Positions 1 through 59,716 of a DNA stretch of 64,000 nt are shown here, one piece after another (position 1 is the first letter of the stretch; every line of letters starts with the position of its first letter). The notes under the pieces are model-generated. The model saw nothing but the letters and a program-made list of their open reading frames with translations, was not told the DNA's origin and ran no database searches. The stretch lies in the NCBI RefSeq assembly GCF_964204645.1, contig NC_134033.1:13276655-13340654 (forward strand). The letters are read 5' to 3'. The translations under genes and the position numbers were made by a program. The stretch is from Tubulanus polymorphus. Lineage: Eukaryota; Animalia; Nemertea.

Positions 1-3000
1 ATATCCGGAACTGCAATTGCATCATGCATGGTTCTGGGTAATGCAATGAACAAACAGCAATTACCTTTATTTAGAGGTGATAAATCAATATATAAAAGAG
101 TATGATATTAACAACTTTGTCATAATGAATGCATTTTCATCATATCTATATATACTAATAGCACCAACGAGTATTTCCGCGAAATTTTTTTGCAAGCAGA
201 TCAGCATGAACTAGTGCAACAGCTATTTCAATACAGGACACATCGCTGTAGCGCAGCGGTAACAGTAAAGTACATGTACTTGACTTTCATTCCAGATTTT
301 GTTTTCGCATCTTAATCTTTCTCTTACACAGTTTGTTTACCGAATACGCATTTTTACAACATTCACAATTCAGTGACATTCTGACTCAAACTTCAAATAT
401 CTACCCTGGAGTTCACCTCCGGAAAAGGGGTTTTGTTTTGCGTTCTACAATTCTTTGACCAAGTGACTCACTACAAACATATGAGTCTATACCAGTCTGA
501 ACAGCTCACTCAAAAAGATCTGCAAAATTCCCATGGTTTCCAGGGGTACTTGTGTTAAATAGTTTCTTTGAATGAATGCTTCGTCAATGCTCTTCAAGCC
601 TCATCAACCACTTTTCCACCAAAACAACGCAATCTTTCTATGATATCAATCATGATATACATATGTACAAAAATTTGATATGCATAATAGCATTTGATCC
701 CAAAATAAGGTACCATCTGATACATTCCCATTTACTCTGTTCTAGGGCTAACAGCTTGCTTCCGGCTCATTAACCACCAGATAGAATATAAATATATCCA
801 TAATTTATAGGAAATCCAAAATCCAACGATTAACTACGTCCCGTAGATCATCCATCCCGAATTGGATCAAAATAATTTCAAAAGCAAAAGGGAATATACA
901 AATTTGTGATAAAAGTTGACAAATGCTGGATGACCCTCAGCCAAGTAAAGAAAATGGATCCGTTGATCTTAACGAGTAACATAGAAGAAACCAGGGGCTG
1001 GAAGGATTCCCATGTAAGACAGAAGTGTAGAATCTGATGAAATTAATGCTTAATGCAACAAAAATCATATCATAATTTTGTTGTAAGATGCAGCAAAAAT
1101 GTAATTTACATAAAGGAAAACATAAAGATTTAATGAAAACCTTCCAGTGCAACCAGGTCGAGACACAATTTTGCCATTAAGACTTGAATCAGGGACACCA
1201 TGCCATTTGGTAACGGGTGAAATGCTTGATTTCAATATTCAAGGGTTAACATATACCATAACCGATGAAGGAACTTGCCGCAATCATGGAAAATGCCATT
1301 GGCTACAATTTTGTAATAGATTGTGAAAACAAAATATGCTTTGTACTCGTACATATAGATAGAAATGCCGAGTTTATTCAATATTGATTGCCCCCCAGTG
1401 AAGATATGCAGACACCAATGACCTAGAATTTCTCCAAAATCATAGAACATGTCATTAGCGATAATTTTGCAAATGATTCTATCAAACGTCCCAACATGAT
1501 TAAGAGAAATTGCATTCACCCACGTGGAAACTGGATAATCAACGAAGTCGGTAATTAATCTCAAACATCAAGAATATAAGTTAAAAACATGTTGATTCCT
1601 CTAAAAGCCTTCTAACTCCATAACACCAATGAGGATAGACGAGATGGCTACCATTTACTGATCAAGTCTGATATGCTTAAGATCTCTCCCCAAAGTATGC
1701 CCATCACAAATGGCAAACCATAAAGAAGCTACATGACTATGATTCAAGCCATAAATCATATATAATTAATGGGGAGGGCAAAAAGGTCACTAAAAATATT
1801 ACTTCCACTTTAGACGAATGGATGAAAAGTGACGACAACAGCTAGCCCCGGGGCTACGTCAAACAGGCTAAAAACAAAACACCACACCAGTGCGTTATAA
1901 TGATGGTGGTATAACAAGGCAACTAGGTGTGAATACGAGACTTTTTACAACGATAAAGTTGTTGATAATGAAGTGAAAATCGGAACTGTTGTACACGTGA
2001 TATATTTTTGCAGTAAAAAGCGATTTTCTCCACCATTGGTTACCTGCGTTGTATTCGCTGTGCCTTGCGCTTGCGCTTCTCGCGTGCAAAGCTGCGCCAC
2101 TTGTCTTTTCTGTATATAAGACATATGGGAATGTAACATACAAACAAATACACGTAATGTGATCATTAGCTCATTACCTATGGTTGTTACATATATACGG
2201 TCACAAAATTATAGGCCTATATTCCATAGAATCTGATCATCAATTGATCAATTTGATCTACGGTAATCGACTTAATTCTTTTGATCGGGGAAACTTCGGG
2301 GTGAGCTCGCAATTAATGCTTCATAACTAGCAACTAATGAATCCCATCTTCTAATCAGCAGAATGCACTTTGGACTTTCTTTTATTTCTTTTGCAGGGAG
2401 AGCACAATGTAGGCAGAGTAGTAGTTGTTGGTGTATTGGACCACATGCCTACTGTTAACGATACGGAAACAGGTTTATCTTATGGAATACGCAGGCTTAA
2501 TGATGCAGTGGTTATGAAGGTATACCAACTTCTCACCAGAAGTTCATCAATAAAGAGGGAAATAACAGTCAAATTCAAGCTCCTAAATCTGGTCGAGTTA
2601 AGAGGGTTGTTTTCATTTTCATTAATTTAAAAAAATTCCAAAAACGGATAATTGGTAGAGCCATCTCTCTACTGGTATGTTCAATGGGCTGATCATCTAT
2701 GGTAAATATATTGAGGGATATCCAGCTTTCGTCAACTCAACGTATGCAATTCTTAGTTAGAACAATCTCCACATAACAATGATATTCTGGCTTGTGATTT
2801 TGTTTTTGTGTGTCCAGACATTGGCAATGAATGAATACGACCAGCACAGACTCTCGACCTGTACATGAATTTGGTTTCTTCAAATCTAATAAAATGTTGT
2901 GTGCAGCTTGACGAGTGCTTCAGCTATTTTTTTAACGCTCTGATTGAGAGGATGCCACTAGACCTGGATCTTCATTGCGTATTGTATACACGCGAGATAT

Positions 3001-3500
3001 GATATCGTCCACGAACCGGTTATGAGCTGGAGGGGTCTGCTTACGTTGGAAAAAAACTAGTTTGAAGAGAAACCTATTGGATTGTTAGGTTTTTCTTAGG
3101 GAAATCATCAACTCGGATCATCCAGTATTACATAAACCACTTTATACGGCCTCATAAACCTAACAGACGTTTGGTAACATTCTGTCCGGATTGCGTCAGA
3201 CAGCGCAAATGTGACTGGGGTGTTACGCAATTGTTTACTAATCTATCTACTAAATGACGAACATAATGCATGACTACCACAGGAAAAAGATCGGACAAAT
3301 AATCTTAGAAAATAATACGCAACTAGTTAACGATAAAATTATTATACTTCCATTGTTTAAACTAGAAATATCAAGTTATGTTTCGGTCATGAATAGCAAC
3401 GTGTACCAATGTCAGGAGCACATTACGCGATCATGAAAGTTTTTAATCTGTCGTTTAAATGGGCTTTAGGTGACGTTGGCTTTGTTTTCTGAATTCATAA

Positions 3501-3730
3501 GGCTAAAAAAATTGATACCTTGTTTCGTAATTCTGCTGAGCTTAATTAAATGTTGACCCGGCTGGCCGCCTATCTACCCTGTGTACATTGCTTTTTGTTA
3601 AATCATGATCAAGCTCATCTTCTATAACTGCTGTTTAACATAAATGTAATGAACGGATTACTAATTTCGTTGCAGCTCAGAAAAGTGACGCGGCCATTTA
3701 GGAGAAACAAGGCATCATTTCATTTTAGCC
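3501..3730. mobile_element. PIF/Harbinger (Tourist-like) MITE, family 1 copy 1
   Basis: TIRs GGCTAAAA..GATACCTTGTTTC / GAAACAAGGCATC..TTTTAGCC, TAA TSD on both sides; homologous to 44962-45176. Confidence 0.85.
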
Positions 3731-4319
3731 TAACGTATTTACATTTCATCATGAAATATGCAATTCATAAATTGAGCACTGCATTGGTACTTCGTTACGA
3801 ATGACGTCATCTTCAAACACATTTCTTAATATAATGAATAATATTAAATCATCACTAAAAGATAAGAGTGATAAAAAAACCAAATTGCTGCCTACACTAC
3901 GCAAAATGTAATAATCTTCATTGAAGATAAATATTTTGTAAAACCTGCGTTTTTTCCTGTACTCATTGCTACTAGTATTCAACAAAATATTGCCTATTGC
4001 ATAAGTTGTTATGTTATGGATAAAAAATTCAGACAACTGGTAGCCATTTGATACCAGTGAATGGCGGAATACTTTCACAATTTGAAAGACTACCCATGCT
4101 ATTGAAAAGAAAAAACCCCAAGAAAACAAAACTTTTAATATCTTTTCTTTTTGCCAATATTAGTATTTATATGTGAATTTCACACTCATTTATTGTTTTT
4201 TTTTTTTTAAGGAGAAAATTTTGAAAAAGAGAATGTAAGCGAGTAAGTTACTTCGTCACCAAATGATTGCCTTCTTTCTGTTAAAATTTTCAAACGCGTT
4301 GTCATTTTGTATCATCATG

Positions 4320-4389
4320 TTATTCATATAACAGTGCAAAAAGAAAGATCGAGTCAAAATATGCCACCAGTCCGAAGAGAGATGAAGAT
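4320..4389 (-). CDS. Candidate terminal exon of gene A (R-SSSLFGLVAYFDSIFLFALLYE*)
   Basis: Acceptor ttttattag at 4391-4390, correct phase 2 after exon 5828-5590, hydrophobic tail then TAA. No homology to gene B, so tentative. Confidence 0.3.
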
Positions 4390-5589
4390 CTAATAAAATT
4401 AATCAAGAAGCTTATATATGTATAAGTTGAGCTATTAAAATAGAACAAGACAATAGCTGGAAGCCACGTGATGCATGTGCAATGTTTATTAACTGATGTA
4501 CTTTGCAGAAAACCGGCAAATATTCCTGAGCCAGTATGATATCAACGTGCCCGCGACTAACTTTTCGCAACATTTTTCAATTTCACCAGAAAGAAGGCAG
4601 GTCGATTAAAAATTCATCATCTGCTTTTTTCACAGCCAGTTAGAGATACGCACGCACGCAGGCAGGCACACAGTTTTTAGTTGTCTGACCGACCGTCATG
4701 TTAAGCACCCAAGCAGACTGAACCCTGGACCCTGCTTAGAACAGTTTTTAATTTGAAAATGTCATTGGATTAGAACACTAGACCCTTGATCTCTTATGTG
4801 ATGACAGATATCTGTGCATAGTACAAGAGTTGGTACGTGGCAACAAAATAAGTGGATGACCAGACACATTTGACCAGTGATAAACAAAACAGACCACAAA
4901 GCATTTTACTGCCAATAGTGTCACTCGGGCTGTAACTGTTTATCAATGCCCATATTTAGGGTCAAAACTAATTGACAACATACCTTAAATGATCAATGGG
5001 CTGATTTGACCTGAAAAGATGGGTTTCCCCACTCATGTTAATAACATGATACATGAGAAAAGCTATTGGTCCACGACTGTATTGTAATCACACTAATAAC
5101 TAATGGAACTCGTGTAGCGGATCAGGCTGAAAGTGGAGCAGTTACGAATTACATGAAGTCTTCCCGAAGACACTACAGTGAACCTTCGTTATAACAAACA
5201 TGGATATAACATATTATTACTATATGACGAAATGAAGATTTTCAACCCTGTACTCTGGTCCCCTGAAGTTTGCTGTATCAACAACAAGGAGTAACCCCTT
5301 TCTGAATTCACACTTTTCCCATGAAAATAAGCGGAAATTGTGTATTTCAGCTGGCAAAATGGCTGCCAGTTAGCAATCTACAATTTTCGAAATGGAAAAT
5401 CTGCAAGAAATCTGATTTGAAGCATTCATATTAGAGAGAGAGAGATAGAGTTATATCACCATAATTTAACGCAATCGTTTTTTAACACATTTCAATCCTT
5501 ATGAATATATTCATAAAGGGAATAATATACAACATGATAGTAATAAATCAGCTGGCTACGAGTTTACGTTAAGTATTATTGGTACTAAC

Positions 5590-8500
5590 CGTGCTGAATG
5601 ATCGACGAGAAATACATCGCGTTGTTTCAGTTCCTGCGTGACGCCAAACATGTCTGTCAGTTCATTCGGTTGGCTACACGGTATCGTCTTGCTGTTACGA
5701 AAACCCGGCAGTTTGCCGAATTGTTTGTACGTTTTACACTGCGTGTAAGGATCGAGATAATATCCGGTGACTAAGTCGCACTTCTCACCGATATTACACT
5801 TGTGCAGGACAGCAACAGACGTGAGGTTCTAGATAAAAACAAAAATACGTTATTAGAAGCGATTCTACAACATTTTCTGTATCATGTTTTACATATAACC
5901 ACAGTTGAGTTTCAGTTTTAGTCATACCTGACTACCTGCTATCTGAAATTGTAGTAGTTTTCCCCAAAAAATGACAGTAATTTGACACCAAAATTTGTGG
6001 TCTAATTGAAAATGAACAAGAAATTATTCTGATGTTGGGAGTAGTTGAGCTTTTAAAAAGCGTAGAAAAACTATACTCTCAAATAGTAATCTTAGGTTAA
6101 GAAGGTCCAGAAGAATTATCGAGGATTTTTGTCAAAAATATTGTTTCGATTAATGCCTAAAACTTACCTTATGCAGTACAACTGATAATTCAAACATGTC
6201 TGCCATTGGGTACGGGCAAAACTGTTTAATGATATCCTCCATTCCGTAGAAAGCCGAGTTGTCATGGTTGTTGAAATGGTTCACTGCTCGATATAGGGGA
6301 GTCAAGTAGATAGCTTTTAATTCGATCTTCACAACGTAGCCAGATCCTGAAAAACGATACAGAAATAGGTTAAACACTCAGTGCTTAAAGAAAATACCTT
6401 CAGATCTTTGGATTTTGGACTACTGGAGGCACTAGACGCTACCAATGATCCTACTGGAGGCACTAGACGCTACCAACAATCCTGAATATCCAGAAAATAG
6501 AACATACCTCTATCGAGTACGAATGTATTATTCTTCTCCATGAAATATACCGACGACGTGCGCACGGTTTTAACTTTCGATAGATTTTCCATTAGAACAT
6601 TTTTGGAACCCTTCGGTTCTGGAAGCGCCAACACATCTGAAAAAGAACAATGTCAAAACATAGATCACAAGATAATTAAATCGTATATCGAATGGCGGCT
6701 TTCACTTTTCGAGAAAGTTTTCAATGAGAAAAATCATACCTCGACATTCACGATCCGATTGATGAACGCAAGGAGCGTGTTCATACTCATGCGGCCCGCA
6801 TTTTCTAGTACAAGCTACGCGAAGACAAAAATTAAAATAATTCATGCCAATTGTATCATCTTTAAACGTGAAGCTCGCATTTGATTGAAGAGAATATCCC
6901 TACTTCACAATCAAATTTTGGTTACATCAAATATGCATACGTACGTATCACATACGAATTGCAATATTTCATAATTCAACGACCCCTGCGTAGAACAATA
7001 TACTAAATAATGCCTATGCCCAAGCTGCATACAGAGCTATCATTACCTTTACAAATAGTGTTGGATTTTTCACCACATGGCTGAGAAATGTACTCCTCTT
7101 CATTACAAAACTTACGACAGCCTATTAAATGATATAGGTTTAATAGTTGTTTCATCTTTGTATTAGTGCATACAACTCTCCCCACGTTATTTTAAACTTA
7201 CTTTCGCATAACTTCGGTTTACCGCCTTTGCACGGCACTACTTCGAACATACCGATCGAACACGGCTGGTTACAGTCTGCAAAAAAGAAGTTTCTCGATT
7301 AAACTTTAATTGATTTTCCTGTGCTACAAAAACAGAAAAAAAAGAACTGAAGAGATAAAGCAGCTGATGCCAGACTCCGGGGAGAGCAACCGACAAACAA
7401 ACCGACTCATCTTGATGTGAAAACAACTACAAAGCAAGATATCGGGGAACCGCGTGAATTTCACATACACTCAAAGCTAAAGATCTCTCAGTGAAGAGTT
7501 TGTATAAAAAGGATGAATAATTACCTCGACAATTTCGGCCATCACCGAAGTAACCATCTTTGCACACGCACATATAAGATCCATTTGTATTGTAACAACT
7601 TGCATTTGAGCTACACTGATGCATAAAACTATGGCGGCATTCATTCACATCTACCAAAATATATGAAATTTAATCAGCATTTTTCGTTTATTAAATGATC
7701 ATTTCATCACCAATAGACGAAACATTTGGTAAAATCAGTATATTTTCTAAAAATCGACCAAACAATTCTCTCCCTTAATAGTAGAATAATCTTGTAAATC
7801 CTTACAGCTGACATCGTCTAGCAGAGCGTTTAAATGTGTGACTTACCTACACAAAGCAATGGTTCATTTGGAATAGGGCGATATCCACGAGGACAGATAC
7901 ACTGACCGGTGACGCTATCACACCCTTTACTGCATCTTTTGTGCGAACAACTGGTGTCACTTTTTGGCGGTAGATAAGGACTTTCAACCTCTAAAATAAT
8001 AATTTCATGAACCTCATCAGGATATACAACAATAATGAAGAAACAACGAAGATCCACATGGTACAATACACAAAGAAATCCGGTTAACAGTTGTGAGTTT
8101 GAGATATAAGATCGCTCCCGTCTTACCAATAAAACAGTTCGATCAAAGGATATCATTAAATATTCATGTCTTATCTGCATGGTCCACTACAGACACCATT
8201 AATACTTGAGAATATACCTCAGAGCAGCACTCTTCCACCTATCCGCGTAATCAAAAGGCGTACTTACCATACCATATAACTTGATTGTGTTTATGCCATC
8301 GTGTTGTATCTAAATTAGCCCGTCGCTGATTATGCGAGAAAAGTTTGCTGCCATTGCGTATAACTCCGCGCGGGGCGTAAACGGTAATGTCTACGGTAGT
8401 CTCATCGATGGCTGCGTAGACTCCAGCGACAATGCCGAATACCATCAATATGGTGAAGCTGGTCATAGGCAGACTGAAAATAACCCGCGAGATAGATCCC

Positions 8501-11500
8501 TAGAACAACGGACTACACAGTTCTATCAGAAACAGTAGGAACATGATTATCTTTTCTTGTATCATGATGAAAATGGTAACAGATAACAAAATGCAACAAT
8601 AGTCAAAACTGAACGTGGCCCTAGTCTGGGGGGTAATGGGAGGTAATGCCGGATTATTACACCGCTTACCTCGTAATACCACCGGAACCCGAGCCATAAC
8701 TACTGCTATTACTGCGAGTGGTAGCTATTCCAGAAGATACCGCCGCTCTCGGCAAACGATCCGCAGATCTTTGTCCGCTGCATGTATCCGTATCGCCGTT
8801 ACTCGAACCAACTCCGCTATCATCACCGGGGTTCGGATCATCTTGATGCTCGGGCCTAATGATAGGTCCGTAACTCACGTGCGGAGGCTGGAAATCACAC
8901 AGCAGTTAACGATCGAGCAATCGAAATTATGAGTTGAAAAGTGATTTAGGATATCAAAATTTAGACATTCAAGATAGACTTTATGTATATCTCCTTTCAC
9001 TAAGTAGATACTACAGTAACCTCTACTAAGTAGTCACCAGTCTATGCATTCTGATGTACACTAAATGATTAACGAGTTAATTGAATGGTAGGATACTTAC
9101 CTGATACGGGTTTCCGAAAACACTCGTCGGTGAAGACCTCTCCGATAAGATCGTATCCATCGCTCTCTTCGGCGGAACAGGGGGCTTAGAACCTTTAGGT
9201 TTAGAATACAACGAATTATTGGACGAGGATACCGACCCCGATCCAGATCCGCTACCGGAACCGCTCGAAAAAGTAGACAACGATACCGGATTTGCCGAAG
9301 TACTTCTGTGCGGCGCGAACGTTTCGTTATAACTGGGAGGCGCTCCGCGAGTATTCGGGAACGCTCGAGTGCACGTATTCGCCGGTTTCCCTTGAACGAA
9401 CAAAGTCGGCGATGAATGATCGTCGGCGTTAATCACAGTTATTACGCTACTAGCGCTACTCGAACTCATGGTACCGTTACTACTACGATTCATATCCGTC
9501 GATCGTTGATTATCCAAAATGAAATCCGGAATACAACAAGACGGAGATTGCGTTCCGTGTCCTTGGTTCGATTTCGGGCTTCCTTCCACGTCGCAATGCC
9601 CCGACGTAGGGCTAATTTGCCAGGCGACGCGTTTTTCTTTCTTTTTTGCGCCGGGTTGTTTTTCCGCGACGGGCAGAATTTCCGCGCGAAATCGGTCGCC
9701 GTCGAATTGATCGCTGTCGTTCGATAGCTGTTCTAACGCCTCGAGAGGTTCCAACTCCTGACCTCCGCAAACGTCTTGAATCTTAAACGCGGGTTGAACT
9801 TGTCTGAAAGCACGATCCTCATCGCCGCTCATATCATCTTTCAATTTATCCTTCGTTTCACTACCCAACATAGAGGCTTCATTTTTAAGATTAGTGTGCT
9901 CAATTTTTCTGGTCCTGCAATAGTTACGGTAATATAAATAATCATTGGCATTTAATTCTAACAATTTCTCTATGAAAAGTGGATGAAAACTAAATAAAAC
10001 AGATCATTGAAAATTTTGATTAAGTATCAATCATTTAGGTATTAGTATTATTTTGCATTTTTCAATACTATTAGCTTTTAACACTGATAACATACATTCC
10101 TTCAACGTCCGTCTCAGAGTCTTGAAGTTCAGAGTCGATTGCAGCTTTGTATTTCTCGCGTCCAATAATACTACGACCAGGAGGCCAAACTTGATGATCA
10201 ATCGATTCCTCTTCCGAAGACTGATACTCGTCAACATCTACAGGGCGAGGTTTTCTTCTTTTTTTTCGTTTAGTGCGGGAGTGCATCTAAATATCGGAAA
10301 AACAATTACAACAAACTACGCCTTACTCAGCAGCATTAGGACTGTAAGCATTTGAGAGTTCAGAATCACAGATTGGAAATAAAAGATTTTTCCGAACAAG
10401 TTTTAGTAAAATTCACTGACTTTTTTGCTCTAAGCAGGTATCAAGCAAGGTAGAGTCTTCTACATTTTTCCATTTATATGTATGTTTATATGCATGTGCA
10501 TTTGTTATTGCATTTCAATCGTAATATGGGCCTATTCACCAAACGTGTTTCAGTTTGATAAATCGATAAGATGATTCATAACACAACAAATAACAACTAG
10601 TTGTACAAAACATTGCCTCTAAAACGAGGGGACATGCAGGATGGTGGCGTAAGCATCATTGTGAAATATCAAAAGACCAGCTGTGTCAACGTGAAAACAA
10701 AGTTATTTATAGCCATGCTGAGAGATCTGTTCAATTACAGTCAAACAGGTTTCAGGATGGATGTGCCATATTTCAAATATTGTAAATATTGCATGCATCA
10801 ATAATTTTCAAATGCACGCATCAATAATTTCCAAATGTACAGGATATTATCCCGATAGAAATGATATGCAAGATTTCCAGTTTCATGATGAAAAATCTAT
10901 TCGATGAAAGCTGTTGTGAGATATGTACTTTACTGAATGCCTGTATTCATACGGGCAGTTCACTAAACTCACTCCGTACTAAGTCTTACCTGCATCTGAG
11001 AAAGTGCATTCGGTTCATTTTTTGCTTCACTCCCTAAATACTGGTTCTTAACGGGGCTGTTGTTGCGGTTCATATTCAGCAAAGGGGCTTGAGTTGAATC
11101 TGATAAATAAAATTAGTGATGATACAATACAATAGACTCCACAGCTTAAAGATACATGAATTCCAGAGCAGGGATCGGTCACTATCACAATGAATTTGAG
11201 TAAGAAAATGTCTGAGGCAATTGACGTCTGGGGTAAATGGAGTTAAAGCGATTTAATGCCAGTTCGATGATGTTAATTAATTCCTACCTGATACTGTTTT
11301 AGACATGAGGTTACAGTGAGATGAGCTGACTGGTAGAAACATCGAACCACTTATATGAAAACCTACACGACAAATAATAAGATATTAATGTATTAGTACT
11401 TCTGATATTAACCCTTTTACAGCCTTAGCAGTGCACGATGATGCTAGTCTATTAACCAGCCGCTAAGTCTACTCTGCACTAGGCTGACAGAAGCAAGTAA

Positions 11501-13676
11501 GTTGACATGAGCCTGGTTTATACCTGACAGCACGAGGCATTAACCTCAGAAAAATTCCTATCCTAATCTTTCAAGGGGTTCGGGGGTCTTCCCCAGAGAA
11601 ATTTGTTTTTAAATGGTTGCATTTTGAAGGCTCTGGGAATATTTGAAACCGTAGTTTTCCGGTATCGGAATTCAGGTTGAATGAGTCACTTTGTTCGTGA
11701 AAGTTTATGGATCACGTTTGATAGTCATCAGAAATACGTATTTGAAAAAAATTATTATCGGCAAAATGCTTGGCCCAGCCGAAGCCGCACCGGCCGCCCC
11801 CACAGCCACCCCCACAGCCACCCCCACCTCCTCTAGCCCTGCTAGGGTGTATGTAATGGTTACCAATAGTTCAGCAACTCATCAAGAGTAAAACAAAAAT
11901 ATCGATATACCGCTGAGTGGGGTAATGCAAATATTGGCACCCGAGTTATTTCAGCACATACATAAATTGAAATGACAATCAATTAAATTTTCAACTCAAT
12001 GGGAAAGTGAAACCGACAGTGAAATAAATACGACATGTTTTGATACAGTTGAACGGTATATTAAAGCAGTCAAACCAGTTTGATTCAGATTTTGATCTCA
12101 ACCAGACATTATTTACAATCCACGTGTAATAAGCGAACATTAATGAATGCGAAATTGATGTTTTTTAACTCTTTCAGGCCATAACCGACCAGAATTACTT
12201 GCGTTCGGTATGATTATATTTCTGGATACAGGCTACAATCACGACTACCGAACTTGTAACTGTTTGACATTATCAGTACTGGTATGTATGACATTATCGG
12301 TATCAAGATTTCGTGGTTTGATTGATGCATTGCAGTCTATAAAAGAGATTGGAAGATGCTTACCGGGATCTGAATGCCAATCAAAGCTCTTAATATACGG
12401 ACGTTTGAACCGATTCCACCAACAAACGTAAATAATCGAAGCAACCATAACGAGAACAGTAATTACGATTACTGTCAATGCAATATACGGAGCCAATAGC
12501 TTCTCTGCAGGAGCTTCGTCATACTGCAAAATAATCAAAAGGACTTCAAAGACAGAATCCATCAATAAACGGCTTTAGAAGTTCAAGTTCCAGTTGTATA
12601 GTTAAAATGTGAGGACAGATCCAAGGCCTACTTTTGAAGGACTTTTGACTCATTTAAAGGTACTTTTGTTCATTCTAAAGCTATATCTGGAGGTGTATTC
12701 ACTAGGCATCACATTCGAAATTGTGCGATGGGTGAGATGTATTCTTAACAGCATGTCCAAATCTGTTCTTATCCTACCAAGATCAGTTCGTAAGGTTCCA
12801 TATAACAAGGCAGTAAAAACAGTTCATTTAGAAAAGGGCACCTCAAAACATTTGAGGGGCTTCTAAACACCCACAAGACTCCTTGGATATGCCAATACAA
12901 CTAAGGGTTAAAACGATTGATAAACTTTTTAACTCTAAGACTCAAACTTAACCTAGCTTTAATTAACCGTGAGCAACACATTCAGATTGTTGACCTCGAG
13001 TTGAATTTTATCAATAAACTTCAGCAGCCTTACTAACCACATGTAATAAGGCTACACTAACAAAAACATTCTCACTTACCACTTGTAATCAGGCTTCACT
13101 TACAAACTAAAACCACTTACCACTTGTAATAAGGCTTCACTTACATACTAAAACAACTTCACTTACCACTTGTAATAAGGCTTTTCCATCCTGATTCACA
13201 AAATGATGCTTCACACGAGACAGATCCATTACTGAAGAGGCCGTTACATTGATACGTATTTGAAAATCAGGAGATTCGATGAATCTAATCCATCCCTGGA
13301 AATATTACAAATAAATAATTGAAATCTCTTAAACGTAAAATTATATTTCCATTGTGGATAATAAACGGTTGAGCAATAAGTCTATGAATACATTACAATC
13401 ATATCTAAATTTTACAGGTGGTAGTACATAACATCCTGGAATTTGACATTAGAAATATCTAAAAATGTGCTTCGAGATATCAATTAGCTTCTATACTTGT
13501 AGGCTATTTCTAATCCATAAAATACCAACCTTGAATGATGTTCTAATATGAATCCATGTAGGAGGTAAAATTCGTTCAGGTAAATGTGTGTAGACGGCCT
13601 CTTCAGTTGCGACATCACTCCCCATTACAAAACAGTGCGAAAAGAGAACACCAAATAATACTGCAAGTCTCCACAT
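5590..13676 (-). CDS. Gene A: uncharacterised membrane protein (SP, ectodomain, TM, long Ser-rich cytoplasmic loop, second hydrophobic segment, EGF, cbEGF, 2x TNFR-Cys, Cys-rich domain); paralog of gene B; 3' end unresolved
   Basis: 16 phase-consistent GT-AG exons: 13676-13530, 13295-13167, 12523-12364, 11362-11288, 11099-10990, 10286-10096, 9914-9101, 8887-8670, 8473-8268, 7990-7847, 7650-7525, 7121-7047, 6814-6740, 6636-6508, 6346-6168, 5828-5590 (3017 nt, open). SP MWRLAVLFGVLFSHCFVMG; TM YIALTVIVITVLVMVASIIYVCWW; cbEGF DVNECRHSFMHQCSSNASCYNTNGSYMCVCKDGYFGDGRNC; TNFR repeats CRKFCNEEEYISQPCGEKSNTIC and CTRKCGPHEYEHAPCVHQSDREC. Confidence 0.85.
6420..6483. repeat. 31-bp tandem repeat x2
   Basis: CTACTGGAGGCACTAGACGCTACCAA(TG/CA)ATC twice. 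Confidence 0.9.
13040..13185. repeat. Tandem repeat (~41-46 bp unit, 3-4 copies) containing the 3' end and donor of gene A coding exon 2
   Basis: CACTTACCACTTGTAATAAGGCTT repeated at ~13073, 13114 and 13160, with a degenerate copy at ~13040. Confidence 0.9.
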
Positions 13677-14050
13677 TATCGTTGAATAGGCCTAGCCTGT
13701 AACAAATGATAAAGTAAATTTTAGATCATATAGTTGATAAATTAGCGACTTGTACAGTGGCAGATCCAGAGGGGGTTTGAACCCAGCCCCCTTATTTTTA
13801 TCCTAGTGCCCTTTTGAAAATCCAATTGATACAGGCTTCTTATTCCCCGTACCGGTACTGATCTTGATCTAATATGCACTAAAATTACATTAAAATGTAC
13901 CTAAATTTCTTCCAGGCTCGGCCCCTGTTGTAATGCCCTTGATCCAGTTTCAAAAAGATGATGGTACTTAATAATTCTAAAATGAAATCAGGCCCAAGGG
14001 TATAAGCTGCATAAGCGACACAGTCAAATCGATTTAGAGTTTAACTGCAG

Positions 14051-14186
14051 GGGCCGAGTTTCACGAAAAAGTGAAAGCCTAACACGGTTAAGTTTGAATT
14101 GTTGTCCTCATTGAAAAAGTGAAGTAACCAATAGCGATTAGGCCTACAACAAAAATTTGAGTTAAACTTTTTGTGAAACTGGGCCC
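14051..14186. mobile_element. Short MITE in the first intron of gene A
   Basis: TIR GGGCCGAGTTTCACGAAAAAGT / ACTTTTTGTGAAACTGGGCCC. Confidence 0.6.
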
Positions 14187-14864
14187 AGGCCAGATTTAGG
14201 GGTTGATCTCGAAGTCTGGACCCCTGCTTTTCCATCATGATTGCGCTTTTGTCGGAGCCAGTTTGACACTAATCCTATGAAAATTGCATCTTTTCGGATT
14301 TAAAGCCTTTTTATTATCAATCATTTCTACCTAATTTGATTTGCAATAGAATTGTTGAATTGCCTTACTAAACTAAAATATTGCTGCAATAACAGGTAAG
14401 TATGTCATGTAATTAACTATCGCAGGATCTTGACCGTGTGTAGTGCCTAACAAATGTGGGCATAAATGTAAATGTTTTGTATTTTATCTTATCATTGACA
14501 TGAATTTAATTTGTGTTGTTTGTTTTTGTCAGGGCTTTTGGGCTCATATACATCCATGTTGTGCACTGTGTTACACCTACGAAAATATTTCTGTATGTTC
14601 CGATATGAAAAGGCTTGCTTGAAAGGCTCGCTAACGAGTTAATGGCCCGTGTTATTAGTTCTCCCATTCCTATGCAATAGGTAATATACAGAATTGAATT
14701 GAATCGTTTGACAGTTAGCCTGACATGACATTGGACCTAATCAATACGAGAAAGACTATCTATAACTATTGTACTATAGTTGACCTACCTATAGCCAAGC
14801 TATACTAGCGGAGAGATAACAACCATGACCACGATCTAAGATACCAGATCCATTCATCCCTTAC

Positions 14865-15364
14865 TCGCCAATTCAGCTCATATTGCGGAAAAAACAAATT
14901 TGTCATCAAAACCGCTGTTCTTTATTTGATGTCCCCCACCGATTGCTGGCCATAATTTATTAATTTCTTCAACCCGTCGCCCGCTAATCGATCTCATCGA
15001 TAGAAACGTGTTATGAAAAATTGAAGCAGTCCTATATACGCCGGAATTCAGATGGGAAAACCCTTTTGTATAGATGTGGAGTGAATTGGAAATAAGAATT
15101 ATATTTCAGCGGGAGTGTTTACTGGGATGGCAATGGCTGCTACGTTGACGTCCTGACAGTAAATGACGTTAACGTAAACGTTCATGGTTTCGATTTACTG
15201 ACATTTCTGATCGGGCCCTAAGCATGATTACCGTTATCTATGCATGATAGGGCTTAGTTCGGTATAGAGCCTTGACTCTCAAGTCATGATGGATGGTTTT
15301 ATCCAGGATATTATTTGCGGTCTACTTTTTAAAAAGCTAGGCCCTAGCACTTGAGTCGCTCGCC
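14865..15364. promoter_or_regulatory. Probable bidirectional promoter between genes A and B
   Basis: Gene B ATG at 15365. Gene A has an acceptor at 13698-13697 just upstream of its ATG and a candidate non-coding first-exon donor (GA|GTAAGG, 14864-14863), so both starts lie within about 500 bp. TGACGT motifs near 15146 and 15164. Confidence 0.55.
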
Positions 15365-42154
<26,790 letters not shown>

Positions 42155-47951: not shown

Positions 47952-50900
47952 ATGAAAATGGCTGCCATCCTGGGCAGCAATGGCGGCGGCGGCGGACTAG
48001 CAGCAGCAAACCGTCCTCCTCTTCCTTCGAGGATGTTAATCGTGGCGATCGTGTTGTTATCGGGGCTGGTTTCCCGTGCAATAGCTACTATAGGATGTTC
48101 GGAAGTAAGACATTCGTATAAAATGAAAGGTTTCGACGAGTGGGAAGTGCCGTTCAAAGCGATTTCAGGTAAGCCGTTTCTACATTTGTTCATTCATTCT
48201 CTCGCATGAAAAAGAAATATCGATTTCTTATAATCACAGTCAGTGTTTGTTAAGATTTTATGTGAATCATCTGACCGTATGTGTCTAGTCTTGCTTTCTT
48301 CAGTTTTTCATAATCTTTTATGCACAGAAATATGAATTGTACTCTTGTTAAAACAAGCAATCGATCAATCAACCCAATGTTGTTATAATTTAGGATAAAT
48401 CAAGTCTTGAATGTATCAATTGAATTAGCAATTGCTATAAATGCTGGTGCTGTTTGTACTAATAGATGGTATGGCATTTGGCTGGGATACTGCGTTGAAG
48501 ATCATTTTACACTACACTGCTTATTTATCATAATTTATAGTTCTAAGCTCTATGCTGAAATGATAAATCTTTAGAACTGGGTGGGTTGTAAGGAACGTGG
48601 CCTTTAGAATCTGCGTTTTGTTTGTTGTTTTTATATGTATGACATCTAGTCGGTAGCTTGCTGGAGTCGTAAATTGATTTGTGCCGTTTATTTTTGCATC
48701 TCAGGAAAGCGGTTAGACAGCTCCTTGTCAAACTGTATTTGTTTTGGGTCATTGGAAAAACAAATCCGGGTTGATTCAGTGGTCGGGTGTCCTATATACG
48801 CTAAAAACAGCTGCGCCTCGTCTGTGCAACTGTATTCCTCAGTAGTTTCAACGGCAGGAAAAAATATCCTTCAAGAAGGACTTGTAGACTTTTTTGTTGA
48901 GAAAGGGGTCCTTATTAAGGGAGTGCCTTTCGACATTTAGTCGCTATACAAATGACAAGTGCATTGAATTCAGTCATTCACATCGTGGCCCCATTGAATT
49001 GCTCACATGCACCACGCTGTTCTTCACTAATCAATTTCTATAAATTAATTTTCCAGGTGAACATTTACAGATATGCCCTCAAGGGTTTACGTGTTGCACA
49101 AAGGAGATGGAAGCGAAATTTTCCAAAAAAAGCATCAGCGATTATAAGAAATTTTCAGGCGAAACTATGGACGTCCTTCAGAATACGTTTCGCTCGCGAA
49201 CGCAGAAGTTTGACAGTATGTATCACAAATCAGTGCAGCATTTATTTCTTGTGAAAGCAAAATGAGGGTCTTTTATATACATTGCTTTTATGGGCGGAAA
49301 AAGAAATCAATTCTTCGCAAAATCATTCAATTTTAGAAATGTTCTTCCAAACTTTTTTTCCTAACAACAAACTTAAGGAGACCTTGTTAGAACAGATACT
49401 AAGATCGTTCGTTATATCCAGTATGAAATTATTGAAATTGTCCTTATAGGATTATATTCTAGATTTGTAATAGGCCTAACCGATTAATGGTTATATCTGA
49501 GTTTTGTCACAACCAGGTTCCACTGAAACGTTTCTGACTGCTTATAATTGTGGTTAGGTACCGTTAAAAAAAGAATATACGAAATCTGAAATCTTTACGT
49601 ATTGGTTTACATGTTACTGTGGGTTTTGGCCGTTCGTCAAGCAGAAGGTTATAAGAGTGCTGATCATGAGTAATGATTAACACATGATTTTAATATAAAG
49701 CACCGTATGTGTACCTGTATAGAACACTTGTACGGGCTATTCACACAGACTGACTGCATTCCATTTCAATGACGTCATCTTCTGGGAAATCAGAGGTCAC
49801 AATGCTTGCACCCACATATCTTTTTTCGTTATAAGTGAATAAATGATTGTGAGCCAGACAAATTTGCACGATTATGATAATTGCGTTTGCACTATTTGCA
49901 TTATTGGCAAAATAGCCATGTATGAGTTCACTATTCAATGACTTCAAAGGTCAATAATACATTAATGTGGGTGGTTGCTCAAGCCAGCGAGTTATACAGG
50001 GATCTGTTTGCCTCGATTTAAAAGAATTTCTAAGTTTTCAACGACAAAATCTATTCAAAAATTGGTCCCACTGAACAGAGCAAAGAATTGTATCATTACA
50101 AACATTTTGTATGTTGTATGAAATAACATGTTGATGTACTCCTATAACAGAATTTACACAAGCCAGAGTTATACACAGGGGGACTGTATGATGCCGTAAT
50201 CTAAAACAGAATCGCTAAGTTTTCAACAGGAAAAAACTATCAGAAAATCCACCCCATTGAACGGCGTTGCATCATAATATAAACATCCTGAATACTGTGG
50301 AACCTGTTGATGTACTGGACAAAATATTATACATGATAATATATTGGTATATTGGACAAAATACATGAAATAACCTAATTGAAACGCCAAGTAATAATCG
50401 CACCCTCCACCAATTGACATTATTGTGGTGAATGATTTGTTATTCCGAGAACAAATCTTAGTACCTTGGGTAGGTGTTGATTTTGGGGTGAAAAAAAGGT
50501 TTAGGTCACCGGATCTTTCACTTAGAAAAAAACACCTTATCTTCCTAAAAAAAAACCTTATCTTCCTGTTCTATTTCATGAAATTTTTACGCTTTTTTTT
50601 TCTTGCAGGATTTTTCACGGAATTATTGGAAAAAGCGAAAAGGGATCTTCACGACATGTTCGTTCGTACGTATGGTTTACTGTATCAACGCAACTCTTTC
50701 GTTTTCACGAATCTATTTCACGATCTACAAAGTTATTACAAAGGCGAAGATCAAAATCTCAGCGACGTGCTCGACCAGTTTTTCACCGTTTTAATGCAAA
50801 AAATGTTCGAACTGTTGAACGCGCAATATCAATTCGATCAGACGTACTTGAACTGCGTGACAGAGTTCATGGATAAGTTGAAGCCGTTCGGCGACGTGCC

Positions 50901-53900
50901 GCAAGTTCTGTCGCATCAAGTGAAACGGGCGTTCATAGCGGCGCGTACGTTCGTACAAGGTCTGGCGGTTGGACGAGGCGTTATCGAGGAAATTACGAAG
51001 GTAAGATATGCAAATATGGAAAACTCGGGAATCAGGGGAAAAAAATGGAGAAATTTGAATAGATTTTGTGACAAAAAAGATGCTATTGACCGCGCAATTC
51101 TTAAGTATCAATACATCATTCACGAAAAATGGTAGCTTTTGAAACCAACAATTTCTCCATTCACCTGTTGTAGATTCATTCGGGGGATTATGTCTTAGAT
51201 TTCATGGAGAAATCGGGGAATTCGGAATAAAGTGGTCGCTGATAGTTAGTGTTGATAACCTCCTCAGTATAGCAGCATAGCCAGCGCGTCGAGAATAGAT
51301 TATAAGATTAAATCCCATTTATATGTACAGATGTACTGTATCTCGGGAAAGCGTCTGAAACGTTGTATACTGATTCGCATTTTCAATAGATAGATTTTGC
51401 TTTTTAACCAATCATGGGTTTTAATGCATCATCGATGCGTGGGTCTGGTACCTTGCAATTCGTAAGGACAGCCCTAAAGGCTTGCATTGCATCATCATTT
51501 AACATATTTTATTTATTCCAATCATATATGATATGAATGTAGTTAATGAAAATGAAATAGATATTATTATCATACTGCTTGATCAGGGAAAATGTCGCTG
51601 TCTGATTTCTCAGTCGTAAGCTCAGTGGCTTCCTAGTATAATGAGAACAGAAGCCGAGTGTTATAAGTCGTTACTCGCATCGATTAATTATATATCTTCA
51701 GGTTCAGCCGACTGCGTCTTGTAAGAAAGCTTTGATGAAGATGATATATTGTCCTCACTGTCGAGGGTTACCGCGTGCGTTGCCGTGTCAGAACTTCTGT
51801 CTGAACGTAATGAAAGGTTGTCTCAGTTACCATTATAACCTCAATACCGAGTGGAATAATTATGTGGGTAAGTTCAAATTAACTGTCTGTAGGGATCAAC
51901 CTATTGTTCAAAGCTGGCGATTTTGTACCCAGGGTCCTTTCAATTCCTCGATTCCTTAATAACTCCTTCTAAAAAAAAAAGGAAAAATAATTTCAAAGGT
52001 GCTTGAATCTCCTTTAATTTGAGCAAAACGCCCAAAACTCTTGAGAAATTTAGGCAATTAGAAATATTTGTAGTTGTACAATCAGTAGACTTCCTAAATC
52101 AGTACAGTTGGGATCAGGATTTTATTTTTACTCAATTAGGCTGTTACCAAATTAGAATCGGAGTTCAGTATGTTAAAAGATAAAGATTTGCTTATTAAAC
52201 TACCTAATTAATGGTATGCCGAGATGAAAGTACTGATTTAGGAGTCTCGAAATTTGAAATGTTCTTAATATATAGGAACCCTCCTGGTACATTATCTTGG
52301 TGCCATTTCTGTCACATCACTTAGATTATTATCGTTGATATATTCACTCGTCTGTTTTATAGATGCACTGATGTCGTTAGCGGAAAGATTAGAAGGTCCT
52401 TTCAACATCGAAGCCGTCGTCGATCCTATAAATGTAAAGATCTCCGACGCGATCATGAATTTCCAGGAAAATAGCGGCGAAGTCTCGTCTAAGGTATCGT
52501 GTGTTATTGAATCTCTTTCTCCAGTGTTTTATAGCTCGGTATTTACATTAGAACTCACTTACTCTGATGACTACGTCCTCCCTGGATTACTCCTAATTAA
52601 GTAAAATCTTAATTATTAATGATAGTTCGAAATGGATACTGGTTACATCTCAAATGAAGTGAATATCTGCAAATAATTTAGCATTTTACTGTTGTTCCAG
52701 GGAGGTTTGCCCAAAATTAAAATGAAAACATTTTACTCCTGTATCATTCCCCCCAAAAAATTTCCCATAGCTGTCCCTGGTTAACAGCTAGTGCGCTGTT
52801 GGAATTATTAGAAACTCTGTCAGTACATGTTCGATACAATCCTACATAAGCTGATAGCTAAATGACGTGTTGTTTAATGATTGCAGGTATTTGCCGGATG
52901 TGGCCAGCCTCGTTTGTCCGGACGGCGCAAACGTGACACCCACGAGGAATATCCGTTCGGCGATTGGAATTACAATAACAATAAAAACTATGTGCGCCCG
53001 ACGACAGCCGCCGGGACTAGTCTCGACCGTTTGGTGCGAGACATCAAAGGCAAAGTGAAGATGGCGAAAGACTTTTGGGCGAATATATCGTACGCGGTGT
53101 GCGATGATCCGAAAATAGCCAGCAAGGAAAAAGATGACGCTTGTTGGAATGGCCTCGGAAAGGCAAAGTTAGTATAGAAATACTTTGTTAGCATTTTTGT
53201 GCCACTTTTCAAAAATGCCCGTGAGGCAACTTGGCTATTTCGTACATTTGTCATAATGATGTTAAGACACTCCAGTTAAAATTTAGCTTGTTTTAAAACA
53301 GATAGCATGATCTAATGTCTTTATCAATTTAACTTAAGAGGACTTCAGGATACAGGTCTTAATAAGACCAGAATGGACTAGCAGTTGATCTAAATTTACT
53401 CTTTTAGTACAATTGCTAGCCCATTCTGGTCCTCTAAAGGTCTGTATCGGGTATGTGCTGCGAAAACTGACTGAGCTAGGCTCTATCCAACGTCCTCTCC
53501 AAGTCAAGTTGAAATAGACAATACAGGCTAACTGATTGTTCCTAGATAGTTGTTTTGTCACTCTTTGACAGAACCTAAAAATTGCTAAGTATCATATTAG
53601 CATGTTCCTATCTGACCTTAAAAGTGTCCTTATAAGGACCAGGTTCGGTGAGTTTCGTATAAACGTTTTCAATTCTCAATTTCTAGATATATGCCTGGAG
53701 TCAGTAAAGATGGTCTAGACAATCAAGTCAGTAATCCAGAGGTTGAGGTCGATATAATGAAAAAGAACTCAATTATTGAACAGCAAATACTGCAGTTACA
53801 GTTGATTACTGGCAAACTACAAAGCGCTTACAACGGACAAGAAGTTGATTGGATTGACACAGGTATTTATATTATATTGATCGTCCGATAGTGAAAATTA

Positions 53901-55190
53901 GTATATAGAATATGACTCAATTTCGATGATTCACTTTGAAATCTGATGAACTATTATTTAGTCATCGGTAATGTCAGCTGGAATGATTATCATTATTGAT
54001 CATTCATTTATTAGGGGCAAGTGTAATTGCGTACTGTGATGCTTGTATATGAAAAAATGGTCGATTTTGCGTACAGGATTGAATAAGTCAAATTTTATAC
54101 GTACGCAATAAATGAATGATCCCTAATAGCCTATTGATAAGTTATCCTTGATTCACTCGATTAACTCCAGTGTTCTCGCTGAGGGGTTTATAGAACACTC
54201 TAACCCACTTTAGTCGAAGCTATTTGGATTCATTGCCTTAGCAGCTATTCATGTGTTTGGGAACGGTTGAGACGATTTTTAGACATTTTGACATTTCGAA
54301 ATATTGATCAACTGTTTGAACTAGGATGTTAGTCTGTATCCTCGACGAGGGGAATATCAGAGGCCATAGAAATGAGGTTAGAGTGTCCTGCCCTAGTAAA
54401 TAGAATTAAATCTTGAATGTCTGAAGTCATATTTGCTGCTTTATTCGGGCATCTGGCTTATTAGTTTATTGAGTTAAAAATGCTTGTGGAGTTAAAAGCT
54501 TTATTTTTCGAAAGGGCACTAGATAATCGCGACCGTATTGCTCAATATGGCACATACATATGTACATCTTCACCCGTCAAGGGATTCGAACACACTACGC
54601 TTAAAGCTGTTCCCCGAATCCCTTGACCTCACGAGTCGTTGGAGTCGTTACTAGCCGACCAGAATCCAGTCGTACCAATCACAGACTTGTAACAAACCGT
54701 CAGTAGACTTCTGTCGGTTTTCCCGTTAAATTGACCAATCAGCGAACGTTTTACCGAACGCAAATCGATATATGACATCACGCGCAACAGCGCCAGTAAT
54801 GAAATCACGCTTCGTGAGGCCAGGGGGCTGGAGGAAGCGAGTTCGGGAGTGATACCGGACCCCTGGCAAGCGAGGATGACATATGAAGTAATTTCATGTA
54901 GTAGTACTCATTCAATATAACATTATTTTGCAGCTGATTCAGATGGTAGCAGCGGTAGTGGTCAATCCAGCGGCAGCGGTTCCGGAGACGGACAGGACGT
55001 CAACAGCGGAATCGGTTTTAACGATTACACGCTACCACCGGTGCAACCACCCGGCAATAAAGGTGTACGGACGCATACGGGCCTTTCGATCGATGACAAT
55101 AAAAATGCCGCGCCCGGCGGTAGTATTACGACAACAATCACGACGATATTACTTCCGTTTTTACTCGTTTTAATACAGCACTTACGTTGA
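47952..55190 (+). CDS. GPC4/6: Glypican, GPC1/2/4/6 (dally-like) subfamily, ~592 aa
   Basis: 8 exons: 47952-48168, 49057-49215, 50609-51000, 51702-51867, 52363-52493, 52887-53167, 53687-53862, 54934-55190 (1779 nt). Motifs [107 protein letters not shown]; SG heparan-sulfate attachment cluster ([15 protein letters not shown]); hydrophobic GPI signal. Confidence 0.97.
51930..52283. mobile_element. MITE family 2 copy 2 (glypican intron 4)
   Basis: CAGGGTCC.. start, ..TAGGAACCCT end, internal similarity to the other two copies. Confidence 0.75.
53998..54124. mobile_element. MITE family 3 copy
   Basis: GATCATTCATTTATT ... AATAAATGAATGATCCCT. Confidence 0.65.
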
Positions 55191-58026: not shown

Positions 58027-59716
58027 CTCTACCTATTCCAAATAACGTAATATTGATGCAGCGGGTAGAAAGAATTGGTAATCTGTAATATCTATTCCTA
58101 AACATGAGCGGAATTGAAATCTGCCTCAACCAGCCGGTGGTGGTCAGGTCACACGTGTAAATCTTGTGTCGAAACACATACGGTATTTCGATTATACCTC
58201 AAACGAACAATCCATAGTTGAACATGAAAAACATTTACAATTTTTATCGATGCCCTGTATGCAAAATCTCTGACCTCGCGTACTTATTGTACCGTCATCT
58301 CTGCGCTAACAGCGTCGTTAGACGACGACGCGCTCTATAAGTAATGTTCGAATCATGAAATTTATATTTATTTAAACTGTACGTTTATTCGTAGATGAAT
58401 GAAATTATATTTCGATGTTGCTCATGTTGGACGGTCCCGATGCACCGGGTCGATTACTGTAGTCGTTAGTGTGCAGGAAGTCCTCGTTATCCTATACTTA
58501 AACTGTCGATGTTGTTGCGTATATTTTTTTCTCTCGCGCTTGGCATACATACTGGACCGGGCCAGTTAGTAAGGAAATTACTGTTTTTTGTTGAGGTAGT
58601 GTGATAAATTAATTTTATGACCCATTTTAACAGGGTAATGAAGTGAAAAAAAGATATCTCATAACAAAATGTAGAAAACAGTTAGTAGTTTTGTGGACCA
58701 CTCCTCTTTAGGTCAACAATTCTATGTATTTCATGAATCTCTAATGTATTTAATTGATGTGAAACTGTACTTATTGTTTATTAGTGCAGGACACTGATTT
58801 CTGAATCAAAGTAACAAGCGATTTTACTATCAAATTTTCCGAAATAAAAATTCAAATACATGTTTGAAGTAGTGCGTCATTTGGTTTTCGAATGTACAAT
58901 CAATGTGAAAAAGCTGTTTGGGTTACATTTCCTTTTTTGGGAAATAAAATTGAATATTTAAATACTCATTTAAAGCATAATGTACATTAAGGATATTTTA
59001 TTTCAATAAAGTTTATATGAAATGAATCATATCCGTCTGTGTGTGTAACACTGATTCGGGCATTTCCTGGGATACCCGGCGGTTATCAGGAGGCGACACG
59101 TTCTCACCTGTACAACAGTAAGGCATGAGAGACCTTCAGGTTGTTTATAACCTTGAGGTACCATCGTGACTATTTTTATCAGCGCAACCTTCTCAAGCGA
59201 TCGTTCTCCGACCTATTCACACTACATCGTTTGTAGCAGGTATACATTACTAACAGCGACGGTATTGCTACATTTTGGAAAACAATCGTTACAGCCTCGA
59301 AACGCGTTTACTTCAAACCAAGACGTTATGAAAAGTGCTGCATTACAGTCGTTTATAATGAAATTGAAGTAAATTCGCTGCAGCAATGCATTAGAACCCC
59401 TCAAAAATTGCTTCCATCGCGGCTGTTGGTCCGAGTTTGTCCACTTAGTAAATGAATGGAGTCGGCAAAATCATTTTGGTTTATTTTTTCTGAATAAGTC
59501 GAAGGTCCGAGTTGGCCATGTCCCAGTCAGGCGTCGTTTACAATACAAGACGCAAACTATGGTTAAATTGAGAATATTTATTTACAAAAAAGATAACGTA
59601 CAGACAGAAACGATCATATTTCACATCTAATCAGCATCAGAGATTTCTTTCGATCCATCCCCATCTAACAGTGAGTAGTTGTAGTCCCTGCTGAAACCCT
59701 TGTCTCAACGCATAGG

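Follow-up and report, generated by a model that had tools for sequence, protein, structure and literature searches.

Divergently oriented paralogs of the nemertean Tubulanus polymorphus encode seven-pass proteins with a predicted class II fusion-protein fold and may represent an undescribed family of animal cell-fusion proteins

A 64-kb stretch of DNA (the window) of the nemertean Tubulanus polymorphus was analyzed, in which two divergently oriented genes, A on the minus and B on the plus strand, encode large multi-pass membrane proteins, both of which match the species' own public 'uncharacterized' proteins. Behind a series of epidermal growth factor-like (EGF) and tumour necrosis factor receptor (TNFR) repeats each protein carries a Cys-rich domain of 560 amino acids (aa), which, judged from a structure model of B, probably has the fusexin-like fold of class II fusion proteins; on the same modelling A and B may be members of the fusexin superfamily. 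The reading that we prefer goes a step further, to class II fusexin-like polytopic proteins that serve as a cell-fusion machine, and for this the chances seem to us about even. The cellular fusexins known are HAP2/GCS1, EFF/AFF and the archaeal Fsx1, and the fusogens of most animal gamete and somatic fusions are unidentified (PMC8784728). It is possible that A and B stand for a family of animal cell-fusion proteins not described before; if so, a conserved family invisible at the sequence level would supply named fusogen candidates in tractable animals (Nematostella, Macrostomum, molluscs, annelids), and a fusexin would have been built into a seven-pass protein with recognition and accessory modules of its own. 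Even without membrane fusion, A and B would be a clear re-use of the class II fold.

Gene A (XP_074657526.1, P0102; 2046 aa) begins with an ATG at 13676 and gene B (XP_074657570.1, P0001; ~1870 aa) with an ATG at 15365, and both are stop-free GT-AG exon chains of consistent phase. The public model of B, which begins at a downstream ATG without the signal peptide, holds exons 2-20 exactly, together with a 66-nucleotide (nt) exon at 27048-27113. Window exons of both genes were searched individually, and full-length comparisons used P0001, P0102 and relatives from databases. The layout is common to both proteins: a signal peptide and a small domain are followed by a first transmembrane helix (TM1), a cytoplasmic loop (~490 aa in A, ~120 aa in B), TM2, a beta segment, EGF, calcium-binding EGF (cbEGF) and TNFR repeats, and these by the 560-aa domain, by TM3-TM7, whose outer loops measure ~270 and ~140 aa, and finally by a short tail.

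The fold of the 560-aa domain was approached with an AlphaFold2 model of the B ectodomain (P0001 residues 240-1030), built from a 21-sequence alignment with a predicted local distance difference test (pLDDT) of 79.3 and a predicted TM-score (pTM) of 0.59; over the fusexin-like domain most 10-residue blocks score 75-95. Foldseek against the PDB returned 288 matches at E<=0.001, and the best 50 of these 288, on which all statements about class rest, were class II fusion proteins in 50 of 50 cases, with all branches of the class represented. Among the PDB matches are hantavirus Gc (E=1.1e-9), EFF-1 of C. elegans (2.9e-8) and Arabidopsis HAP2 (4.4e-8), besides E1 of Semliki Forest and equine encephalitis viruses, nairovirus Gc and dengue E, with alignments of 566-652 columns that match the size of the domain. 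Envelope glycoproteins of viruses, for the most part bunyaviruses, were likewise the top named matches in the Foldseek viral library (best E=1.8e-10). In gene B the domain (P0001 residues ~455-1013) extends over 27977-39447 (+), with exons at 27977-28256, 28336-28510, 33699-33894, 34030-34125, 34212-34811 and 37737-37859 and the start of 39239-40388. By our own reading of the model the order of its secondary structure fits class II: four short strands (460-505) and a 20-residue strand (553-572) running into a disulfide loop are followed by a helical insert of 100 aa, in which about ten Cys are conserved, by return strands (698-742) and more strands and, at the C-terminal end, by a seven-strand sandwich predicted to be an immunoglobulin (Ig)-like domain (~926-1013), which ends ~25 aa before TM3 at 1040. 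The Ig-like domain III, linker and TM anchor typical of fusexins are hence all present, with the unusual addition of four more TM helices behind the anchor. Both paralogs, and the cnidarian proteins too, retain all three predicted domains, the linker and the anchor, and 19 Cys columns show conservation of 90% or more across the family.

Several points weigh against reading the domain as a fusexin and the proteins as fusogens. The TM-scores of the Foldseek matches reach at most 0.26 by target, with a root-mean-square deviation (rmsd) of 19-29 Å and identities of 6-10%, and are equally low for pre- and post-fusion targets; the pTM of 0.59 comes from a model of one paralog, B, which was compared as a whole. 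No sequence match of the domain was found to HAP2, EFF/AFF, Pfam, NCBIfam or any PDB chain, and profiles of PDB sequences gave nothing for the fusexin-like or TM parts and only EGF matches for the wider ectodomain. The family alignment contains neither an invariant Glu-Arg pair nor a clear exposed aromatic fusion loop; within 545-715, where strands were assigned by deduction, no acidic column is conserved and the sole Arg column is ~70% conserved. To our knowledge, known fusexins carry one or two C-terminal anchors, not five. Moreover, Nematostella, which has a member of the family, also has a HAP2 (PMC6089408). The low TM-scores, the high rmsd and the shallow alignment would fit a misleading Foldseek match, brought about by long beta strands and an Ig domain in a model built from few sequences, so that the domain would have a fold of its own in an adhesion protein or a channel or transporter subunit; the occurrence of the TM3-TM7 module without any fusexin region in chlorarachniophytes, behind an RCC1-like domain, points the same way. 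We regard this as unlikely, as no other beta-rich elongated protein occurs in the best 50 of 288 PDB matches, and E values go down to 1e-9 - 1e-10 at a probability of ~1 with whole targets covered.

More weight is due to the possibility, still a minority one in our judgement, that the domain is a true fusexin homolog which has lost fusion and acts instead as an extended domain for adhesion, recognition or scaffolding, or that one paralog is a mere chaperone. The missing clear fusion loop and the insert packed with Cys and helices agree with such a loss, and the four extra TM helices together with EGF/TNFR repeats on domain I might hinder the folding back of a trimer. The complete set of domains, linker and anchor in both paralogs and cnidarians speaks for retained function, and EFF-1 fuses membranes without a hydrophobic loop (PMC8784728). 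Within the Cys-rich insert a short conserved helix of the form LxxxF (P0001 626-632; 33759-33779, +), whose hydrophobic moment of 0.1-0.7 is modest and variable, may be a candidate membrane-contact element or may instead be buried.

Among known class II systems, the B domain has its best Foldseek matches in viral proteins (hantavirus and nairovirus Gc, alphavirus E1, flavivirus E), with which it has in common the predicted beta-rich rod, the C-terminal Ig-like domain, the short linker and the TM anchor; the signal-like internal helix upstream of it also recalls the processing of viral class II polyproteins by signalase (PMC8706100). Unlike these viral proteins, A and B are intron-containing host genes conserved across phyla, with EGF/TNFR repeats ahead of the domain, a large insert that is helical and rich in Cys, a further four TM helices and no sequence similarity. 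Scans of viral, metagenome and prokaryote contigs, of low sensitivity, gave no relatives and thus no close viral one. Likeness to HAP2/GCS1 lies in the structural match to the Arabidopsis protein and in helices in the presumed tip region, and a use of two HAP2 paralogs is known from Dictyostelium (PMC8784728). HAP2 is marked by an invariant Glu-Arg salt bridge at the tip of domain II (PMC6089408), and membership of A and B in HAP2/GCS1 was ruled out, since none of 22 members matched the HAP2-GCS1 Pfam model, and neither a match to the sequence of a solved HAP2 nor an invariant Glu-Arg pair was found; unlike HAP2, the A/B proteins are multi-pass. The label 'Hapless 2' of the Macrostomum member, which has no HAP2-GCS1 Pfam match, is probably automatic and was treated as a lead only. 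With EFF-1/AFF-1 the family has in common a Cys-rich animal ectodomain without an obvious hydrophobic loop, in addition to the structural match to EFF-1; architecture and phyletic range differ, and membership was ruled out for lack of an EFF-AFF Pfam match and of sequence similarity to EFF-1. In its seven-pass architecture, EGF/TNFR cap, paired locus and probable history as an intronless cassette the family is unlike any fusexin that we found described.

That A and B are paralogs had been proposed in an earlier reading of the window (the original prediction) together with the view that they form a receptor and co-receptor or decoy. The proteins align with E=7e-73 at 22% identity over 1346 columns, and the paralogy is significant beyond the EGF/TNFR repeats (3e-28), namely in TM2 with the beta segment (2e-7), in the post-TNFR domain (8e-26) and in the five-TM part (5e-14 and 9e-13). 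All 16 motifs quoted for the pairing were found on the strands given, the TM1 exon measures 160 nt with phase 0-1 in both genes, and the exons that had been linked recur in the public gene models. At the N-terminus the proposed motif pairs were not significant exon against exon (z below 2), and the pairing there stands by common introns and by profile comparison of the A with the B clade (probability 76%, E=2e-5) only; the cytoplasmic loops show no similarity, by profile comparison either. Two 75-nt TNFR exons in each gene are correct for B, and A has three. The family had been called unnamed, and indeed no full-length match to a characterised family was found in Pfam, NCBIfam or PDB sequences: Pfam scans of window exons and database proteins detected EGF and TNFR only, NCBIfam nothing. 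Neither a description of the family nor its locus tags were found in the literature searched, in which coverage of subscription journals was thin.

As to a receptor function, TNFR Cys-rich repeats are present in both proteins (PF00020: E=7e-7 in B, 1e-3 in A), and cbEGF and TNFR repeats meet or approach the Pfam cut-offs; the conserved divergent layout and the long cytoplasmic loop of A, which is of low complexity and bears Pro-rich motifs, would also suit a pair that binds ligands through these repeats. The repeats account for only about 8% of the chain and are a minor part of the ectodomain, in which the domain with the predicted class II fold dominates, the cytoplasmic loops are not conserved, molluscan B proteins lack the first EGF module, and no death, kinase or other recognised signalling domain was detected by Pfam in either protein. 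Both are full-length seven-pass proteins, neither being truncated, so that the receptor and co-receptor or decoy proposal was given up as quite improbable. A TNF receptor was ruled out by architecture as well, in view of seven TM helices, the lack of a signalling tail, the minor place of the repeats in the ectodomain and the absence of a detected death domain.

In A, B and Nematostella TM2 ends in small residues at -3/-1 (VYA, VYS, VYT, AMA), a feature that is less distinct in some of the gastropod B proteins, and annotated isoforms of Patella and Haliotis begin in the loop before TM2. Together these observations suggest that TM2 could be an internal signal sequence cut by signal peptidase, by analogy with viral class II polyproteins, for which signalase processing is documented (PMC8706100). 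The signal-like TM2, the short gastropod isoforms and an in-frame stop just past the exon-8 donor of gene A would also be expected if each 'gene' were two neighbours, a single-pass N-terminal protein and an EGF/TNFR protein starting at TM2, fused by prediction. We consider this very improbable, given that in B loop and TM2 lie within one open exon, that four A orthologs retain a phase-2 intron ahead of TM2 and that gene models spanning both halves are on record for Nematostella, Lineus, Lingula, Owenia and molluscs.

Relatives bearing names were found in Lineus, Owenia, Lingula, Patella, Haliotis, Batillaria, Bulinus, Plakobranchus, Sinanodonta, Argonauta, Macrostomum, Nematostella and Sanderia, so that besides nemerteans the family covers molluscs, annelids, brachiopods and cnidarians; no deuterostome or ecdysozoan was among the named matches, most short matches carrying no name. 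From word-based protein searches came only Lineus orthologs, a single B-like protein and a single protist protein. In a tree obtained by a quick method, unrooted and without bootstrap, three clades each received 100 in the Shimodaira-Hasegawa-like approximate likelihood ratio test (SH-aLRT), namely A, B and a cnidarian clade, the position of Macrostomum on its long branch being unsure. Several lophotrochozoan phyla are represented in the A clade and several in the B clade, and one copy was seen in cnidarians, where no second paralog lay within 10 kb at two cnidarian-clade loci. In Lingula, exons of B begin 3.07 kb upstream of the A start and run on the other strand, interrupted by an assembly gap mid-way, so that the head-to-head arrangement is common to two phyla, and the old duplication in divergent orientation that had been postulated is thus upheld. 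In Owenia both genes are located on one 31.9-Mb contig with near-adjacent accessions, and in Lineus the contigs recorded for the two genes are of equal length. The gap in Lingula (L004, ~3735) removes the middle of gene B, which is annotated there as a 592-aa fragment. The Nematostella copy (LOC5508744; L003 1-8571, -) stands head-to-head with Nuf2 at a distance of 1.4 kb. In Patella and Haliotis the B gene reaches a great length (228-260 kb), the gastropod B proteins P0155, P0157, P0129 and P0130 are without the first EGF-like module, and the Owenia B gene harbours, on its opposite strand, a nested gene for a 476-aa protein containing DSL and F5/8 type C domains.

The distribution of introns divides the genes into two parts. 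Upstream of the fusexin-like domain 7 intron positions are common to each pair among A, B and Nematostella. In the fusexin and five-TM part A has 16 introns and B nine, none of them common to both, and A orthologs have 12-14 of the 16 in common among themselves; in Nematostella this part is an intronless single exon, and at a second cnidarian-clade locus it forms one 4.4-kb reading frame. This pattern is most simply explained if the fusexin and five-TM part was an intronless cassette when it was joined to the 5' exons and again at the split of A and B. The joining of the cassette to EGF/TNFR exons, which would be the older part, probably preceded the separation of cnidarians and spiralians, and the resulting gene was probably duplicated into A and B before the lophotrochozoan radiation; the cassette itself may have come from a virus or by retroposition. 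A less simple alternative is that cnidarians lost all introns of this part and that one paralog underwent full turnover. Under the cassette interpretation the intron pattern would record its entry into animal genomes, which bears on the question of a virus or cell origin of class II fusogens.

The five-TM module, encoded in gene B at 39526-42154 (+), comprises TM3 (~39526-39582), TM4 (39751-39807), a helical outer loop, TM5 (40703-40759), TM6 (41150-41206), a second helical loop with Cys, TM7 (41885-41941), a short tail and the stop. It also occurs in chlorarachniophyte protists (P0137, P0166 and P0179, Amorphochlora and JGI proteins), colinear over its length, and its position there behind an RCC1-like domain indicates a function of its own; by sequence comparison it appears to be an old, mobile eukaryotic unit without a Pfam model. 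Foldseek of the module against the PDB gave a best E of 3.3 (pTM of the model 0.49), and with this and no Pfam match an identity with Prominin or Tweety was rejected at that sensitivity. DCST1 and DCST2, which are needed for gamete fusion, are ~22%-identical, interacting paralogs arranged head-to-head (PMC8989947). The DC-STAMP family resembles A and B in being multi-pass, tied to cell fusion (DCST) and equipped with long helical outer loops, by analogy only; unlike A and B, no fusexin or EGF/TNFR domains are reported for DCST, and DC-STAMP/DCST membership was ruled out in the absence of a DC-STAMP Pfam match in single-sequence scans and of a C-terminal six-Cys RING, the tails containing 0-2 Cys. 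The fungal Prm1, with a role in cell fusion, is a four-pass protein with two Cys-bearing outer loops (PMC3718343). TM4-TM7 of A and B are like it in topology only, with their two outer loops and conserved Cys. The spacing of these segments presumably also resembles that of Prm1.

If A and B are fusexin-like fusion proteins, cleavage at TM2 by signal peptidase would release an N-terminal membrane piece from a C-terminal piece, on which the EGF/TNFR repeats, sitting on domain I, would act as recognition or regulatory modules. Once triggered, the TM3-anchored rod would bridge to the membrane opposite, form trimers and bend back towards TM3; the other TM helices, together with the two helical outer loops, might form a built-in accessory module in a role of Prm1 or DC-STAMP type. 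A and B are probably partners and could act together as a hetero-oligomer, or one might chaperone the other. In its most complete form the proposal would add a fifth branch to the fusexins: an active animal fusogen, in which an intronless, possibly virus-derived class II cassette that brought along its own multi-pass module, an accessory of possible kinship with Prm1 or DC-STAMP, was joined to host EGF/TNFR exons before the cnidarian-bilaterian split and which in lophotrochozoans works as an A/B heteromer from a bidirectional locus. Taken as a whole this form of the proposal is tentative, with chances well below even.

Of gene A (all minus strand) the window contains coding exon 1 with the signal peptide and the start of the small N-terminal domain (13530-13676), exon 2 continuing this domain (13167-13295), whose flanking phase-0 introns are common to B and Nematostella, the TM1 exon (12364-12523) and five exons of the cytoplasmic loop (11288-11362, 10990-11099, 10096-10286, 9101-9914 and 8670-8887). 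There follow the exon of the short TM2, with its signal-peptidase-like VYA end, and the beta segment (8268-8473), the EGF-like (7847-7990) and cbEGF (7525-7650) exons, the three TNFR exons (7202-7276, 7047-7121 and 6740-6814), and the first third of the fusexin-like domain (6508-6636, 6168-6346 and 5590-5828; residues ~851-1031), its fold presumed by homology to B. Gene A had been taken to be contained in the window. Instead, the donor at 5590 opens an intron of ~12.45 kb, to which positions 1-5589 belong, and the remaining 14 exons, with the rest of the fusexin-like domain and the five-TM module, lie beyond the left edge (retrieved locus L001, 30542-36153); an end of the gene at the stop at 5556 was ruled out by the public model, which continues past that donor.

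At two gene A donors (5556-5590 and 8667-8670, -) read-through meets an in-frame stop at once or within at most 11 codons, and intron retention there would, from the sequence, give truncated products. A 41-bp tandem repeat at 13032-13183 duplicates the exon 2 donor and provides extra copies of the exon end as possible cryptic donors. Within the long intron an open frame of 86 codons (2370-2630, +), without a Pfam match, is probably not a gene. Between the two start codons lies a common upstream region of ~1.69 kb (13677-15364) without notable repeats; the head-to-head arrangement with a shared region of ~0.5 kb had been predicted, of which the arrangement stands and the shorter distance would need a putative non-coding first exon of A near 14790-14900, which this region may hold.

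Gene B (all plus strand) begins with exons 1 and 2 (15365-15610 and 16292-16444), encoding signal peptide and N-terminal domain, followed by the TM1 exon (19992-20151) and by exons of the cytoplasmic loop, TM2 and beta segment (20971-21155, 21368-21578 and 21995-22093), its signal-like TM2 bearing a VYA motif. EGF-like (22257-22409) and cbEGF (22506-22628) exons and two TNFR exons (22918-22992 and 24013-24087) come next, and the 66-nt exon at 27048-27113, of phase 1-1, is a linker outside the TNFR repeats. At ~59000-61730 (-) several protein-like segments, possibly exons of another gene, include a weak match to eIF4E (E=1e-3) below cut-off. Downstream of B a glypican gene is located at 47952-55187 (+), three exons of which match the Pfam Glypican model with E down to 3e-44.

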